A stretch of DNA of 64,000 bases from Calcarisporiella thermophila CBS 279.70 (taxonomy: Eukaryota; Fungi; Calcarisporiellomycota), in the NCBI RefSeq assembly GCF_041956535.1, contig NW_027192207.1, forward strand, positions 343,163 through 407,162. Reading direction: 5' to 3'. The notes under the pieces are model-generated. The model made no database searches. It saw only the letters and a program-made list of their open reading frames with translations, and had not been told where the DNA came from. Position 1 is the first letter of the stretch; the number at the start of each line of letters is the position of its first letter. Of the stretch, positions 65-41,012 are shown in pieces. Both the position numbers and the translations under genes were made by a program.

Positions 65-760
65 TTAAAATGTAGAATTTTGCTTAAAAATAAGCAAAAT
101 AATCCGAATAAGCTGGAAGCGTGAACACCCCCTATGTGTTACTTGTACTAGGTAATATTTGGTAGTCATGACAGGTGTCGGGTCTGTTTCCTTATATCTT
201 TGATACAACAACTCTGCCTTTTCTAAGTTCTTTCGTTCTTTGTAGAAAACGGTTAGTTCTTCCAGAGCATTTCCTGCTTCATGACTCTCGGCTCCATACA
301 TCTTCTCAATTATCAACAACCACCTTCGATACAGAAGTTCTGCCATATTACAATTTCTGCGCTCTTTATAGAAATTGGCAAGGTCATTCAGAGAACCTGT
401 CGTTTCTTTACTCTCGGTTCCACTGTACTCCATTATTATTGTAACCCTTCTCTGATATAGTTGTTCTGCTTTATCATACTCTCTGCACTCTAAATAAAAT
501 CTGGTTAACCAGCTTAGAGCCAATGATGACTCATTACTTTTAACCCCAAACTACTCCTCCATAATCGTCATCATTTTTTTATACAACTGCTCTGACTTGT
601 CATATTTTCCGCGTACTAATCGGGTAGCTTGTTAAGAGCATGTACTGTGTACTTACTCTCAGTTCTACAAAGTTTCTCCAAGGTCAATAATGCTTTATAC
701 AATAACTGCCCTGACTCGTTAACATAGCCTCGGTCTAAATAGAAGCTGCCCATATTGAAT
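65..760 (-). pseudogene. Degenerate TPR-repeat (kinesin light chain / NLR-type) gene fragment
   Basis: About 42-aa repeats of the type YDKAEQLYQRRVTIIMEYSGTESKETTGSLNDLANFY. The pattern continues upstream of the ORF (RGKYDKSEQLYKKMMTIMEE*FG; GSFYLDRGYVNESGQLLYKAL) with in-frame stops and a frameshift. Confidence 0.75.
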
Positions 761-7077: not shown

Positions 7078-8172
7078 ATGAAAGCTTTCTATTTTATTCT
7101 CCATTTATTCTTCCCAATCTTCGTGTTTGCGAACCCTCTCTCGGATGCCCTGCGTTCGATTACCACTGAATTGGATCATCAACCGCTTAACGATACCCAA
7201 TTAAAAGCCACGAAGCAATATGCCAAACTAATGGCGGTAACCTATTGTGGTGCTGGGAAGCCAGGACCATTTGAGTGCAGTTTCTATTGCAATGAATTTT
7301 CTAACACTACGGCTGTTCAATATTTCGAAGTACCACCCTATGATATCAATGGCTATATTGCTCGGGACGACAGCCGACAAGCCATTGTCATCGCCTTCAA
7401 AGGAACAACCTCATTAACGAATGTTAAAGTTGACAAGAACTATTTGCTTACCCCATACGACGTAGCAGATCCAAAGAAAGGCTTGGTTCACCTAGGTTTC
7501 CGAAATGCTTATTTGAGCGCAGGTAAAGGAATATTGCCAAGTATAATGGACCAAATACAAAAATATCCAGGTTACGAAGTAGAAGTAATTGGCCACAGTC
7601 TTGGCGGTGCAATGGCTGCATTTCTTGCCATGAATCTATGGGAGACCGAGAAAGTTTCGAAAGAAAAGCTTGTGCTTGTGACATTGGGTCAACCTCGCAT
7701 AGGAAATGGCGAGTTCGCTGAACGATTAGATCGCGCTGGATTTTTGGCAAAACGCTTGGTCAATGGTAGAGATATGATTTCAGTTTTCCCAAATCGTGAA
7801 TTACTGCCGGGATATAAAGTATGTAAACCCGTGCTTCGATTTTTAAAGTGATATTCCCATTTAACTCTTTTTATTTTTAATGCCTTAGCACCATTCACCT
7901 CAAATTCAGTCTGAATCAGGAGCCACAATACAGTGCAGAAATGCAGAAGACCCTAAGTGCTTTCATGAGAGGCCACTAAACTGGGCCGAATTTCCTAATG
8001 TAAATTTGTATACAAGTAGTTTTGCTCTGAACGTCAACTTATAAGAAATTATTATACGTAGCATCTCTGGTATAATGACGTTAATATAATACGGTGTATT
8101 GGCGATTATATACCCCAGCGCGTCTCTAAGGTTTTTTCGAAGTTTCCCCTGCTGGATCCCAATTGGATTTAA
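7078..8172 (+). CDS. Secreted class 3 triacylglycerol lipase
   Basis: N-terminal signal peptide, AFKGT, VHLGF, GHSLGG nucleophile elbow, TLGQPRIGN, RDMISVFP. Two 3' introns lead to the catalytic His exon (HLWY) and TAA at 8170-8172. Confidence 0.93.
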
Positions 8173-8852: not shown

Positions 8853-11299
8853 ATGAAAATCCAGTCTATTTGGTTTAAATGCATAAGGCCTGAAGTGACG
8901 GCATGGTCCAGAGTCGCCTTAAGAAATGTCGAATTTGTCGATGATCTCAAAAAGGTTATCAAAAGCGCAAAGCCAAATCAGCTCAAAAACTACGATGCAG
9001 ATCAACTTACCCTTATGATTAAGAGGAAAAATGAGGGCGATGAACAAGCAATCGAACTTGATCCAGAGGAAACAATTGCATCAGTCTTAAAGCGTTTCAA
9101 TAACGACTGCCGGGTGTTGGTGTCAGTTCCTAATGGTAAATAATCCAGGAGAAATATTGCTTTTGTCACTTTCACTTGCTATCCATTTAAATTTTTTTTT
9201 TGTATAATTCAATACTCCATTAGTCAAACGAAATAAGCGGCCGCTGGATGCAGGTATGCACTTCACTATTTTTTTTTTTTTTGTAAAACACACTCTTCTT
9301 AATGCATATTTTTCTCATCGAAGATGAGGGACCTTCAAAGAGGCCAACCATGGATAGTCTACTGAAAGGTAAAATTGTATTGTGCCTTTGGGTTGCAGGA
9401 TCTATTTTAATTCAGTTATAATTCAATTTTTTTTAGAGATTGCACCATTCCAGTCACTATTCCGCCGGATCATGGAAGAGACTTCCAGAGATCCTGAGGA
9501 GTATTCTAACCCCAGCAAAATTATGAAGATTCCCTTTCCTTTCCTTAAAACCATCCCAGTCGACCGTTTTAAGATTACTGATGGGTGTTTTATTTACATG
9601 GGTCGCGAGGGATTCGCTCGAGTGCTGGCTGAGGTCGAAAGTTTGGAATATCCAGTCGACTATCACAAGCTTTATGTTTACGGAAGTATTGGCTATGGAA
9701 AATCCCATATCCTTGCAGCAATGACATGTCTCCTCATCCAGCAAGGAAAACGAGTTGTCTACCTCCCAGATTGTCGCGCTATGGCTGCAGATTTCCTGGG
9801 ATATCTTACAGGAGCTCTTCTTCTAACCTTTGGTGACTCCGAATTCCATCAACTTGAAATTTTAAATTGTGACACTACAGAAAAAATTCATGCATTCTGC
9901 AAAAGAATTATTTCCAGAGATTCTATCCGTCTCTACTTTATCGTCGACCAACTAAATGCACTGGACCACGAGATCATCAACGAAGATAGCATCACCAACT
10001 CTAAAAAGAGCACAGTACGCGAATACTTAGACTTGATTACGTCTGAGCACTATGTCATAAAAAGCGCATCGGCGAACTTTCAATCAGCTATTCACATGGA
10101 GCAGAAACAGTTATCTGAAAAAAAGGTTGCACTTTTAGGAGGTCTAACTAAGGTAAAAACTTTTCTTAATTAAGTTAAAAATCGTAATTATTCTCAAATT
10201 AATACTGTTGTTGGTTAACTAGACAGAGATGCAGGAATGGTGGAAGCTCTATAAAGACTATTTGCCATATCTCGATCAGAATGAAAAAGAATTTATTGAG
10301 GACATCACCGGTCGCACGCCTCTTTTTCTACGTCCGCTCCTGAGACTAGATCACAACAAGAGTTTCAAAGAAATGAAGCGCAATTATCTGGAATCTCAGG
10401 AGCTGAAAAAAATATCCAGCCAAGTGGAATTGTTTGCAATGCAGAAAAAAAACGAATTAAGCCGACTGGACTGGCGCAGGCAAGTCTAGAAGTTTATTTG
10501 CTTTGTTTTATGCATTTATTTTATTACATCTTCTCCAATTTGTAGATACGTGGATTTCATGAATGGGTGCCTGCTCAGTGATAATGTGTCAGATAGCATT
10601 AAATACTACGATCACCGTCACTTCTATATCGACGAGAAAAATGTCGGTCGTTACACCTGTGGGATGGCACGTGATACAATGGCAGGAATATTTCGCGATT
10701 TGGGAGATGACATTTTCCTTGATACTGCGTGGTTTGAGAGTTTGAGTATTTTTCAAGGCAACCCGTCAGTCCTTGGGTTTATCGTGGAACAGATGTGTCT
10801 TAGTGGCATTTCACAAACCGGATTAAAAGTAGTCGGCCTAGGGTTCTCCAATATGAAAACCATAGTATTCAGAAAGGATATTCCCAAGTATAACACTAAG
10901 CTTGAACTAGCATTATATGTTCCTTTAACTTACAACTACACAGCAATTGACGGGTTGATTTTGCCTTTGGACACGGAAAAAAAGATAGCTCACTTAGTTC
11001 CGATTCAGATTACCATTGCCAAGGATCATACAGATTCGGAATCAAAATTTTTCGCTAACTGGCATAGCTGGACACGAGCTCTGACCGTCGAAAAATTTAC
11101 AATCAGGGCCATATTTCTGTGGATCACAGAAGGAAAACGAGAGATAAAGGAGCTGGAGACAAAGCTGAGGGAAACAAGACAAGGTGTCATTTTGGTACAA
11201 CCGGAACATGCCAGTGTGTGCGTCACAATTGAAGACATAAATAGAAAGCTTGGTGAAGCTTTGAAAATAGCCCGAGGGCTTCGTGATATTGGAAGATGA
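8853..11299 (+). CDS. Crinkler (CRN)-like effector: ubiquitin-like header + P-loop NTPase + PD-(D/E)xK-type nuclease domain
   Basis: Header VDDLKKVIK..YDADQLTL..RVLVSVP. Two micro-exons encode KRNKRPLDADEGPSKRP. Walker A GSIGYGKS, Walker B FIVDQ, C-terminal AIDGLIL..PIQITIAKDH. Confidence 0.8.
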
Positions 11300-11779
11300 A
11301 GTACAGTCCGTTGTAAAAGTAACCCTGAAACAGAGAGATGATCTACGGTAAAAGGTGGCCACATCCAACTAACAACCGTTTGGAGTCCTGATGAGTAATT
11401 TGAACCGAAGATTATCTGATATTGTGATATCTATTCACAGTAAGGGTTAATATTATTAACCCATCATATTAAATTTACTTCAACTTAATTATTTTTCTAT
11501 AAATAGGTCTAAACTAAATATCAAACACATACTCTAAAATCCCACTTATACCGCTTTTATTTCATATACAATACTGTAGAATGATTATCAAATGACCCTT
11601 TTTGGTAAAATATCAAAATTTTTTGGAATTTTTTGTATTTTCTTAAGAAGTTTGTGTGGTGATTTTTCTTCATAAGTGAACGCTGAATGCTTAGGATCGA
11701 GCACTTGAGCGACTGTCATCACTGGCTTTTTTATAAAATTGAAATGAGCAGCAATCTGTCAAGCTTCTGTCAAGTTTTT

Positions 11780-31320: not shown

Positions 31321-32651
31321 ATACTCTTCACTCTACCCATTGTATTGTTAGTCTCTGTTTATTTACCCTTAGCTGGATTTATTATGGATTTATATACATG
31401 ATATTTACATCTATTTTACTTTGGTAATATTCGGGCTATCGTTCCCTCCACTCCTTTAGTTCTATTCAAATCGCTCGATCATTCTGTTCAAACTTTCCCT
31501 AACATGGCTCACGAAACGATTAATCGACTTTGTCAATCCTCATCCATATTTATTTGCCGCGCAGATAATACATGGATATTCGTTGTACTAGCTTCTCTAA
31601 TGTCACTGTGTCTTATCATCATTGACCACTTATAATAAAATAAACTAGCTTTCCACGCTATTTCCTGAAATGCTACGGTGTGATGCGCTGAGATATTAAC
31701 AGCGGATCGATATAACAGATATTTCTGTCGAGCGTAGAAATTGATAATTCTGTTGGTATAAGAGATGTCGTCCTTTTTAATTTTATTGATTATTCATGAG
31801 AGTTAGTTTTTTTGTCTATAGGGCTAAATTCAATAGTAAATATTAAGGCAGCTATAAGCTTATAAACAACTTAGCAAAGCAAGTTTAAAAGGCTATTGCA
31901 TTTGCAATATTTAATCTTTAATATACCAAACGGAAGTAGGATCAAAGTGGTGTTGGGTGGTATTGCAATTTAGATTGGGCTCGAATAACCCTACAAAAAA
32001 CTGGACATATAAAACGTAAAAAAACGCCAGGCATAATGAATCCCGAACAAAAACCTCTGAGTGCTTATGTGTTTTTTCATCCTCTCCCATACATTCTATA
32101 TGCTCTTTTGTGTTTCCATTTTGGTATTATTATGTAGAGCCAATTATAAATAATTAACGAATTAATCGTAAATATTAAAATGGAATTAATGTAATTTTGA
32201 TACATACAGTAAATTATCTTTTATTGCTCTCCTTTCAGGTAGCACTTCCTGGCTGGTGTCTCCTCGGCCGTTTTTCTATACTGATTCCTCTTCTTCTGCC
32301 TCTGCCCATTGAATTGGTAATCTGTACATCTCTCCTCCTGTTTTGCTTTGGTGATATATACATCCTAGACATTCTGCCATTTCACGCACTTCGCTTCGAA
32401 TAATCTCTCTTGAATTAGTGGGTGATACTCCGATATTCACTTCAGGGCAAATGTATCTCTCCATAGCCCTCCAACTCCGTAAAGTTAGTTTGACCAGGCT
32501 GGATCGCTGTAACAACGTGCGCTGGCGATAAGCGGGAAGAGGTTAGAGCCTACTCACTTAGACGCGGCTTCAACAAAGAGTCGTCTGGTCTATCTCTTTT
32601 ATAAGTATGTTCTTGCAGGCAGTGTCTCTATACTACCCAACATTGGAAGAT

Positions 32652-32770
32652 TTACTCAATTATCTGGCCAACCTCTATCGTAGCCAGGTAAGTAGGTATG
32701 AACAAACGGAACCACTTCACGAGTGAGCACTGGCAACCCAGAATAAAGTTCTGGAACCTGACCATCCAGT
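32652..32770 (+). pseudogene. Isolated degenerate TPR repeat
   Basis: LLNYLANLYRSQVSRYEQTEPLHE*ALATQNKVLEPDHP follows the NLR TPR consensus also seen at 39391-39600. Confidence 0.8.
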
Positions 32771-32868
32771 CAAGAAATCTACGCCCAAAGTTATGAGCTC
32801 TCAAATTTTGCTCTAAATACTGAAGATTTATTATTACCTGGCATACTGACTATACCATTAGTCTTTAC

Positions 32869-32925
32869 CAATCAAGTTTCATAATTTTTATAGTATTCTA
32901 CCTGATTCTTTGTGGAATCTCTCAT
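32869..32925. repeat. Dispersed 57-bp repeat, copy 2 (inverted)
   Basis: See 8327-8383. Confidence 0.75.
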
Positions 32926-35030: not shown

Positions 35031-36253
35031 TCAATGCTGGGATATCGGCGTTTCAGGCTGATCGTGGGTTGCACAATGAATTCCACCGCCACCCGAAGCT
35101 AGAGTATCAATTTCTACCGGAACAATATCTCGACCTGGGTAGCACTCTCGAAGGATCTGTTGTGCTCGCTTGTCGGCCTCTTCGTCCCCGAATTGGGGCA
35201 CAATCACTGCTCCATTGGCAACATAGTAGTTCACGTAGGATGCTAAGAATTCCGCTCCACGGCCTCTAATTTTTTTGCGATCCGGCTCGAACAATTCGAT
35301 GATCTTCAGCGGAGAGCCGCGAACATCCGTGGCTGACTGGAGAACTTTCTTGGCTTGGTCAGAAGAGCGAGACCATACATCAGGAGGTGAGCCGGGAGCT
35401 GGTCTATTCAGAATCACCACCCCAGGGGCAACGAACCGAACTAATGCGTCTACATGCGCGTCTGTAATATCTTTTCCGCGTACACCTTGCAGCCAAATCA
35501 CTTTCTTGATTCCAAGGACCCTCTTCAAATCTTGCTCAATCTCGTCCCGACTGCGACCTGGATTCCGATTATCATTGACCACTGAGCTTTCGGTAATCAA
35601 GAGCGTGCCTTGCCCATCTGTCTCCAAAGAGCCCCCTTCGGATACAATAGGAGCTTGTATGCGTGGTATCGCGTACTTGGCGAGAATCGTACGGGCGACT
35701 TGAGCATCGTTGGCATGTTTTTGCTTCTTTCCCCACCCATTGAAGTTAAAATCGATCCCAACCACTTTGTGTGCTTCCTCTGCGAACACAGGTGCAGTGT
35801 CTCTAGCCCAGAGATCGTCGACCATGGCTGAGATGACCTCAATTTCAGTGCCTAAAACGCTTTTAGCCTTTTGGGCCTGATCGGGATGAGCCAAAACAAC
35901 CACTGGCTCATATTTGGCGATAGCACGTGCAATCTGGGCAATGTCATTTCTCACATCAGGAAGCTCGTAGCCCCAAATGGATTGCGATGCTGGCCACACC
36001 ATGAATGTTCGCGCATGCTTTTCCCATTCCGCAGGCAGTCTACGCAACGTCGTGCTATTCGAGATGCTGTTGTCAGATAGCGATTGGGATGGAGTCTGAC
36101 CTGTCATTTCTGAAAAAAGGAACAATGAATAAACATTCATTTCAAGTTATTGAGAGAAGCCCCTTGGAAATAAACCTAACCTAGAGGATATTTACCAGGT
36201 TTAGCAAACACGGCCGCGAGGGTGAGTACAAGAAAAGAAGAGAAAAACTTCAT
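35031..36253 (-). CDS. Secreted agmatine deiminase / peptidylarginine deiminase (PAD_porph family)
   Basis: Exon 1 MKFFSSFLVLTLAAVFAKP, intron about 36110-36195, then LPAEWE, DDLWARD, FNFNGWG, EGGSLETDG, DAHVD, SYVNYY and GGGGIHCATHDQP with catalytic Asp, His, Asp and Cys intact. Confidence 0.93.
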
Positions 36254-37818: not shown

Positions 37819-39643
37819 ATGTCCGCGCAAACATCTAATTGCAATGGAAATATACAGACTGAGACGGGTGGAAGTGTCAATGCTGGAAATATTTGTAACA
37901 ACTATTTTATTTTGTTGGGTAAATCTCTTTCTAGCGAGCGGTTTTCAGTAATCTAACATTATATCTGAACTAGGAGCCTCCAACTTAGCAAAAATATCAA
38001 CACCAACTAAATCAGTCAAAAGAACCTTTTTTGCAGTTCCACCGGAGAATAAGAATTTTGTTAATCGCCCCGATATGATCAGAGAATTGGAAAATGCACT
38101 TGCTGAAAGTTCTACAAGAGGATGTAAAATCGCTGCTCTCCAAGGTCTAGGAGGAATGGGGAAAACCCAATTAATGTTGAGATACTGTTATTTGCACCAT
38201 GAAAAATACGACTTCATATTTTGGCTCAAAGTAGATAATTGGACTATGGTAGTAGACTCCTTCCGCAACCTAGCAATTAATATATTGGTATACCAGATAA
38301 TGCATTGAGTGAAGCGTTAGAGGGTGATATTTTCGAATGGGTTCGAGATTGGCTTGAAACCCATTCCAAATGGCTAATTCTTTTGGATAACTTGGACAAG
38401 ATTATCAACAGGATATTTACAATATTGCTATGTAAAGGTGGAAATATCCTCCTGTCAACACGCGGGCGAATTTCGCGTAGGATGGCCACAGTTATTCATG
38501 TGAAAGAGATGAAAGAAGAAGAAGCTCTCTTGGAACTACTTGGCCATGAATTGCATACAATTGATAGAGAAAGTACGCGGTTTTGCTATGCCCACGATAT
38601 TGCGGTTCAACTTGGATATATGCCACTCGCGATAGAACTTGCGCTCGCTTACGTTGAGAATACTTCTTTATCTTTCGAAAAATATCTTAGCCAGCTAAAA
38701 TTGAATCGAAGAAGGTTGTTTTCCTATTACGACGAAGAATCCCTTGGAGATTACCCGCACTCAATAGCATCAGTTTGGAACATATCTTTCAATCGAGTTC
38801 GTGAGATAAACCCTGCGGCTGTACCGATCCTCGAAGTTTGCACTTTTCTTCACCCCGACGAAATTCCAACTCTTCTTTTTGAGTGTCAATATAGGACTTT
38901 CAACTTTTGTTCCAACTCGCAGTCGCGAGAAACCGAATCGCTAGAATGCGAAAGTGTTCAAATGGCAATAGCACTGTTAAACAAATTTTCACTCGTGCCA
39001 TTGACTGTTAGAGATACCGAAGGTAAAGGCACCGAGTTGATGGGTAATACACTAAGAATACATCGTCTCGTACGTGAAAGTGATCTATGATTCACTCGAG
39101 GATAAACAGAAATTAGACTGGGCACGGAAATTGGCCATCGCTTTTAATATCGAAACACAATCTTCGGATGTTTTTGATGCCAACTTTCGATCAAAAATGA
39201 ATTTATATCTTCCGCACTTATACCATATCGTAGATATACTCGAGAATATCAGCGAAGGACCTATTTGTGCGAGGATCTTATAAAGTTGCTAAATAGGACA
39301 ACTTTATACTTGTGTAGAAAAGGAATATATAATATTACGAAGAAGTTTGCTGAATTATCACTAAATATCAGTGAAATCATTTATGGAAAAGACCACCCAG
39401 ACACGGCCGCTTCGCTCTACAGTCCGGCCGTGCTCTACCGTGTTCAGGACAAATACGAGCAGGCTGAGCCCCTATTTCAGCGCGCGCTGGCGATTGGGGA
39501 GAAGGGGTTGGGTCCCGATCACCCAGACACGATCGCTTCGCTCCAACTGTCTGGCCAATCTCTGCTCTCATCAGGGCAAGTACGAGCAGGGAGAGCCTCC
39601 ACACTTTAGTGCACCTGAATCTAAATCATGTAATATATCTTAA
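37819..39643 (+). pseudogene. NB-ARC-TPR NLR with short N-terminal amyloid-like motif; four frameshifts, TPR array truncated
   Basis: Exon 1 (37819-37918) and intron 37919-37973 splice in frame to FAVPPENKNFVNR..GLGGMGKTQL (Walker A), WLILLDNLD (Walker B), LSTR, GYMPLAI, IHRLV, then GPDHPDT TPRs. Frameshifts near 38283, 39073, 39267 and 39544. Confidence 0.88.
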
Positions 39644-40184
39644 CCCGAAAATTATTAATTATACGCCACCTCTATTTCAGCATTCCCCTTTAGATATCTC
39701 CCTATGTTACCTTTTATATAATATTCCCTCAAATTTTCAAGAATTATGGGATTTAAATGAGTAATTAGTTAGTATTTCCGGTTTAACCTAATTCTGCTCT
39801 AGCATTTTCATAATTTATTCATTTTTCTCATTAATGATATATAATTCACCTTTTTTTCTATTTTTTTTTTTTCATTTTTCTAAGAGTTCAAGGTCAATTT
39901 TGTACTAATATATCGGAACATATTTTAAAATATTGACACTTCATTCCTTTCTACATTATTTACTTTCAATGTGTATCACTATGGTATTATGTCCTCATAT
40001 TACCTTAGGAAATACGAATTCATTAAAAGGAATAATTGGGAGGCAATAGCATCAAGAGAAATGAGAAAAGAAAACCAAATCAACAGAAATTTATAAAAAG
40101 ACCTAGGTTGAGCTTCGTATAAAAAGTATAGAAAGTTACAAATTGAAATTGAAAGAATAAAAAAAAATCAAATATACAGCTGAA

Positions 40185-41012
<828 letters not shown>

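Follow-up and report, generated by a model that had tools for sequence, protein, structure and literature searches.

We report here that a short motif, which forms the whole N-terminal region of a broken NLR gene in the fungus Calcarisporiella thermophila, is found under selection at the terminus of 15 NLR sensors and three enzymes, and on nothing else found in the genome. The best reading of this distribution, and to our judgement a likely one, is by analogy with known systems that the NLRs signal to caspase-like proteases and a lipase through an amyloid scaffold made of this motif of about 30 residues. The gene lies in a stretch of 64,000 nt, called the window below, for which a preliminary description made from the letters alone had inferred an amyloid-type NLR system in an early-diverging fungus. 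The host indeed lies outside Dikarya, being placed by NCBI in Calcarisporiellomycota, and the inference gains support, at the level of sequence, from the motif in intact paralogs and from matching effectors.

The window gene itself is described in Table 1. Because an in-frame TAA directly abuts ATG 37819 on its 5' side, as had been claimed, the NLR has no longer N-terminal domain in the frame of exon 1. This exon of 100 nt encodes 33 residues, and the following intron, canonical in donor, branch site and acceptor, would join it in frame to exon 2. The proposed splicing to the NB-ARC domain is therefore in agreement with the sequence signals, and four paralogs have the exon spliced identically in their NCBI gene models, which may or may not rest on RNA. 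Searches were run exon by exon, the joined spliced models serving for frame checks only. Exon 2 taken alone gives a weak NB-ARC match (Pfam E 4e-4) and the TPR part a strong one, and the order of an NB-ARC with P-loop and then superstructure repeats is that of fungal NLRs of the NB-ARC/TPR kind. The copy had been called frameshifted, and we count four frameshifts plus a truncated end, the gene stopping with some two and a half TPRs read, while intact paralogs reach 1077-1372 codons. The window copy is thus a pseudogene, which cannot signal normally itself, and this counts against the amyloid-link reading.

Table 1. The NLR pseudogene of the window and its parts (position 1 is the first letter of the window)
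Feature	Position	Strand	Basis
In-frame stop TAA	37816..37818	+	sequence
Exon 1: 33-codon amyloid-signalling-like motif, the whole NLR N-terminal region; core Q4-I25 at 37828-37893	37819..37918	+	
Predicted phase-1 intron, 55 nt, GTAAAT / CTAAC / CTAG; position and phase as in paralogs	37919..37973	+	sequence, NCBI paralog models
Start of exon 2: linker and beginning of NB-ARC, P-loop 38144-38167, to first frameshift near 38280	37974..38280	+	
Remainder of NB-ARC: Walker B, helical and winged-helix part, weak DUF7779 match; second frameshift near 39077	38281..39078	+	
Helical segment after NB-ARC in a different frame; third frameshift near 39260	39077..39264	+	
Remnant of TPR_10/TPR_12 repeats; fourth frameshift near 39544; truncation near 39600	39265..39600	+	

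Several other features of the window are listed here for completeness. Degenerate NLR-type TPR fragments with no NB-ARC are located at 65-616 (-) and about 32634-32925. A Porphyromonas-type peptidyl-arginine deiminase domain (PF04371, E 1e-113) is encoded by one long open frame at 35031-36140 (-), 1.7 kb from the NLR pseudogene. The truncated end of the pseudogene is faced by a convergent gene at 40150-40830 (-), which we take, by eye from its translation pattern, to be a Rab (Sec4/Ypt-like) GTPase. The multi-exon gene at 8860-11300 (+) has a P-loop domain and an N-terminus that we presume to be Crinkler-like, and a gene like it stands before the NLR of a metagenome contig, L066. At the start of that NLR (L066:2949-3070, hidden first exon, phase-1 donor, 5' of NB-ARC-TPR) lies an N/S/I/V-rich exon, which resembled the motif at first but was set aside, as it scores just 2.9 bits; it is a candidate for a different motif.

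On the whole, the genome (28.2 Mb in 116 contigs was covered) contains at least 22 related NB-ARC loci, and the search for paralogous first exons suggested in the preliminary description finds 15 NLR paralogs with a related first exon upstream of the NB-ARC. For this reason the window exon is more than a chance occurrence. The shared pattern is roughly Q-S/T-x4-G-x-V/I-H-A-x2-G-G-x-V/I-x-x-G-N followed by another strand, and in the copies checked the exon stops at a phase-1 donor, mostly 94-103 nt past the ATG. Broken or short copies make up about two thirds of the motif-bearing NLRs, most paralogs having been read in part, and at least five have open frames of 1077-1372 codons, showing that the motif is kept in long intact members as well. 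VTP21DRAFT_9796, VTP21DRAFT_10838 and VTP21DRAFT_1062 are intact paralogs. The uncorrected pN/pS of the exon is 0.49 and 0.30 in two subfamilies; nonsynonymous differences being this much rarer than synonymous ones, the exon peptide is under selection. A short motif that is the sole N-terminal domain and is conserved among NLRs is what NLR amyloid signalling generally displays.

We then report the search for partners. A profile built from 13 NLR first exons only was run against the six-frame genome at E<=10 and gives 18 matches, namely the 15 NLR first exons and three non-NLR proteins. All three are enzymes with the match at a terminus (E 4e-4, 0.012 and 0.059): it is the C-terminus in two Peptidase_C14 genes (C1:901059, C1:766137) and the first exon in a patatin (C16:694932). 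The two caspase tails and the patatin exon score 29, 26 and 28 bits against the NLR-only profile, a level reached by 0 of 2000 shuffles, and re-profiling with the three enzyme copies added gives no further matches in the genome. Genome-wide, the E-values of the caspase tails are modest, and the two caspases do not make independent evidence because they are paralogs. Still, the same motif stands at the terminus of separate effectors in the same genome, as is general for NLR amyloid signalling. Proteins with a matching C-terminal motif, on whose existence the preliminary description had made its inference depend, are therefore present in these two caspases. Of the effectors it had proposed to look for, separate enzymes with a terminal motif are found, including the patatin, while they carry single copies and none is of the HeLo/HET-S kind. 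The recurrence of the exon motif on caspases and patatin suggests, as far as sequence goes, a prion-style link from receptor to protease.

The two proteases, VTP21DRAFT_383 and VTP21DRAFT_327, are intact, single-exon, C14 caspase-like proteins, each with one C-terminal copy of the motif behind an acidic or Pro-rich linker. They match Pfam Peptidase_C14 (E 4e-16 and 5e-12) and have the catalytic dyad, His in FSGHG and Cys in LNCC, with SGH and C invariant. The AlphaFold caspase model (pTM 0.77) matches the folds of metacaspase, MALT1 and legumain, with the tail at low confidence; caspase fold and His-Cys dyad together place them in Peptidase_C14. A fungal type I metacaspase (Yca1-like) was considered and rejected on grouping, N-terminal prodomain and introns, as compared with the metacaspases of the same genome. 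A third caspase paralog (C39:19131-20138) is interrupted by an internal TGA, and its short tail, rich in N/S/G/Q, differs from those of the other two; it may represent a further class of motif or one in decay. In the patatin all catalytic motifs of a patatin-like phospholipase (GxGxxG, GxSxG, DGG) are present, and its motif sits on a phase-1 first exon, the same exon structure as in the NLRs. The effectors are unlinked to the matching NLRs. An intact NB-ARC-TPR NLR of 1279 aa, VTP21DRAFT_386 (C1:911554 onward), is located 9.5 kb from VTP21DRAFT_383 in divergent orientation. Its first exon, though of equal phase, does not match the motif, which makes this NLR a less likely partner of the caspase and counts against the amyloid-link reading.

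The nearest homologs of the caspases are found in Jimgerdemannia and Endogone, together with sequences from sequencing runs. All of these homologs end in a linker and a tail rich in N/G/T/V/I/F, and despite the similar composition the NLR profile of Calcarisporiella gives these tails 0-10 bits. Co-evolving partners should have tails that match the NLR heads of their own genome and vary from lineage to lineage, hence the mismatch is, on the sequences at hand, consistent with lineage-specific co-evolution of caspase and NLR motifs. An Endogonales NLR with a head matching the caspase tails was not found, nor is there a called NLR neighbour on the Endogonales caspase contigs. In a maximum-likelihood tree (midpoint root, limited sampling), the fungal caspases group together in a single clade (100/100), nested in prokaryotic C14 proteins and well apart from the two ordinary metacaspases of C. 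thermophila. Probably the caspase and its tail were obtained from prokaryotes before the split of Calcarisporiella and Endogonales, or have spread between both.

In prokaryotes, one sister caspase is flanked in its operon by an AAA-TPR gene and an NB-ARC-TPR gene, the genes overlapping by 4 bp. Among 79 prokaryotic loci, four have a caspase tail matching the head of the adjacent P-loop gene (0-1 of 500 shuffles): Methanothrix with NB-ARC, Oscillatoriales with NACHT, Pseudanabaena and Anaerolineales. The C14 tail-head loci (L074:3974-6177, L135:3992-7152, L134 and L090) are BASS-like, C14 being unnamed in the text of the BASS preprint. Four other prokaryotic loci have caspase, motif and P-loop fused in one frame. 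The fungal motif has no sequence match among the prokaryotic caspase tails, the best reaching 13 bits. A metagenome scan for related NLRs yields mostly bacterial TIR or CHAT-type loci. One intron-bearing metagenome contig (L067:3-1663) has a Peptidase_C14 exon directly 5' of an NB-ARC of the fungal clade, by its sequence a candidate all-in-one caspase-NLR. Taking the four tail-head pairs, the four fusions and this contig together, all-in-one and two-component layouts both occur, and such co-occurrence is typical of amyloid-signalling effectors.

It is of interest to discuss what kind of motif this is. Its composition is rich in N/G/S/V/I/T and nearly free of Pro. Compared with the HET-s-related motifs (HRAM), Gly at position 19 is present in 16 of 17 members, and hydrophobic residues (counting A, T and C) at positions 8, 10, 16 and 18 in 15, 14, 17 and 13 of 17, respectively. 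Position 5 is mixed, with 10/17 hydrophobic; at position 3, where N/Q/H is expected, N occurs in 6/17; and the preferred R/K at position 15 is seen in none of the 17. The double pseudo-repeat with which HeLo or HeLo-like effectors end is likewise absent, the copies on the enzymes being single. The count of 7 identities in 19 to HET-s in the preliminary description is arithmetically right for the HET-s sequence quoted there, but several of these identities are specific to the window copy: N3 is shared by 6 of 17 members and T10 by 2 of 17. Scoring against library profiles (HRAM, PP and sigma, as had been proposed there, and RHIM) gives no support: none of the 17 members matches the Pfam amyloid-motif families at E<=10, nor does the motif match solved amyloid structures in PDB, both searches being of low power for so short a motif. 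Membership in HET-s, PP or RHIM was rejected, the Pfam, PDB and Atlas searches all being blank. So of the claim that a HET-s-like motif is the entire N-terminal domain, the extent and the HET-s-like pattern hold, while from sequence its membership in HRAM is not demonstrable and we do not file it there.

This leaves room for another view, the main rival, to which we give a small but real chance, that the motif is a true coupler of sensor and effector acting as a homotypic adaptor of finite size, made of a beta-strand or a beta-helix, with a role like that of CARD or EAD, rather than as a self-propagating amyloid. Motif sharing and co-evolution indicate coupling, not fibrils; no known amyloid motif is matched; each effector has a single copy; and in related bacterial caspases EAD1 and TIR adaptors occupy the same C-terminal place. 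However, the length, the N/G/V/I/T composition, the G-N ending and the terminal site behind a flexible linker match the tested amyloids of HRAM and BASS, and AlphaFold finds no globular fold in the motif. That AlphaFold gives no confident structure for it at all counts against the amyloid reading too. We keep to the amyloid scaffold as the preferred reading. Its steps follow, as an analogy, those of NWD2/HET-S, PP and BASS: binding of a ligand would make the NLR oligomerize, the clustered N-terminal motifs would nucleate a cross-beta filament, and the effector motifs would co-polymerise on it, one copy per rung. Proximity may then activate the protease (by dimerisation) and the phospholipase, and the outcome would be the regulated death of the hyphal compartment, with many unlinked sensors converging on few effectors.

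The effectors may also be questioned. It might be that only an NLR-to-patatin or NLR-to-NLR link works, or that the executioner is a pore-former whose motif has diverged too far for the profile, and that the likeness of the caspase tails comes from composition or old ancestry. The patatin exon is the best non-NLR match of the profile, with the exon structure of the NLRs, and the genome search scores best candidates only. Pore-former candidates do exist: the sole HeLo-domain gene found (C38:7175-7831, E 6e-52) and an MLKL_N, protein kinase and LRR gene (C6:81717-83590). Both were rejected as effectors, there being no motif match in the former or in the part read of the latter. The former is multi-exon with a long C-terminal region, in a host outside Dikarya, and the LRR-containing, sensor-like architecture of the latter is unusual for fungi. 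In the genome no HeLo-like PF17111 was found, a Pfam search for gasdermin (an insensitive test) gives no match, and none was found adjoining the caspases. The Lipase_3 gene of the window (7078-8100, +) has no motif and a hydrophobic, signal-peptide-like N-terminus, and is not taken as an effector of the motif system. Composition is controlled by the shuffles, and the tails of orthologs, equal in ancestry, give no match, which makes this explanation improbable. Weakest is the idea of a mobile N-terminal leader for stability, localisation or protease recognition, spread by duplication and exon shuffling and having no part in caspase signalling, which the many broken or short NLRs, the shuffle-friendly phase-1 exon and a pN/pS just moderately under 1 would allow, but which we hold very unlikely as it leaves unexplained the intronless C-terminal copy on two proteases and the like matching of heads and tails between neighbouring genes of prokaryotes.

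The amyloid-scaffolded system can be compared with those known. Like Podospora NWD2/HET-S and HRAM1-5 (PMC4518210), it has effector-less NLRs with one N-terminal motif resembling that of the cognate effector, and the motif shares with HRAM1-5 a conserved Gly19, in most cases with Asn after it, and a core in which every other position is hydrophobic. Unlike HRAM1-5, it has no R/K at 15 but Gly at 6, an upstream Q-S/T segment and a downstream strand (~30 aa) (PMC4518210). In addition, unlike NWD2/HET-S, the effector has one copy and not two and is an enzyme and not HeLo, the genes are unlinked, and the host is outside Dikarya (PMC4518210). Unlinked single-copy motifs on enzymes with an excess of NLRs are a published pattern (PMC9815663), as in the HRAM3-like NLR12/PNP_UDP pair and the basidiomycete NLR05/08/22, which have a single copy on an enzyme and non-adjacent genes; the ratio of NLRs to effectors is 15:3 in C. 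thermophila and 5.7:1 in that survey (PMC9815663). Unlike the systems there, the effectors here are C14 caspase-like proteases and a patatin (PMC9815663). Bacterial BASS, including CHAT-BASS/NLR, also have a protease of caspase fold whose C-terminal motif matches the head of an NLR (bioRxiv 2020.01.06.895854), and the prokaryotic sisters of the fungal caspases show this arrangement in the same lineages (Cyanobacteria, Chloroflexi, Methanothrix). The published BASS example has CHAT, not Peptidase_C14, in adjacent operon genes, whereas C. thermophila has C14 in unlinked ones (bioRxiv 2020.01.06.895854). NLR control of a caspase-like protease or a patatin as the death effector would be shared with the gasdermin-cleaving CHAT/S8 protease NLRs of fungi (bioRxiv 2021.06.03.446900) and with PLP-1 (PMC12881547). 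In Dikarya, the caspase-like CHAT and patatin domains are reported as fused to their sensors (bioRxiv 2021.06.03.446900; PMC12881547), the patatin NLR being PLP-1 and the CHAT/S8 NLRs being likewise fusions, while in C. thermophila the enzymes are separate and would be coupled by the motif.

What is new in this reading is the effector types and the fungal lineage for NLR amyloid signalling, while the signalling principle is known. For fungi, descriptions of amyloid signalling come from Ascomycota and Agaricomycetes, where the effectors are pore-formers, lipases or nucleoside phosphorylases. No mention of amyloid motifs of Mucoromycota was found in the survey mentioned above (PMC9815663), and Mucoromycotina are described as nearly without NLRs (PMC9119436). 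Our literature search, with many subscription papers outside its reach, found no paper on an NLR-amyloid-caspase system, on amyloid motifs of this lineage or on an amyloid-tailed fungal C14, in accordance with the preliminary description, whose author was not aware of such a system in early-diverging fungi. If the reading is true, this would be to our knowledge the first eukaryotic caspase-family protease with its own signalling amyloid, and also the first NLR amyloid signalling we know of in fungi outside Dikarya.

The proposed pathway resembles the animal apoptosome and inflammasome (Apaf-1/caspase-9, NLR-ASC-caspase-1) and the RHIM necrosome, in that an oligomer of a STAND ATPase would nucleate a polymer by which a caspase-fold protease would be activated through proximity. 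Animals use CARD and PYD death folds for this, and their caspases carry no amyloid motif; the likeness is an analogy, not orthology. We lean, with some reserve, towards the view that Calcarisporiella, and probably Endogonales, may have an inflammasome-like pathway in which NLRs would switch on a phospholipase and a caspase-like protease of horizontal origin, with a shared amyloid motif, encoded as a shufflable exon, as the direct link. The source is a culturable thermophile and its genes are testable in Podospora or yeast, which offers a minimal setting of two components in which to ask if a caspase-fold protease can be activated by an amyloid scaffold, as it is by CARD filaments in animals. 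Such a system in a sister lineage also matters for the origin of amyloid signalling, which may be ancestral to terrestrial fungi or may have been brought in repeatedly from multicellular bacteria, and for the effector the caspase tree points to import.
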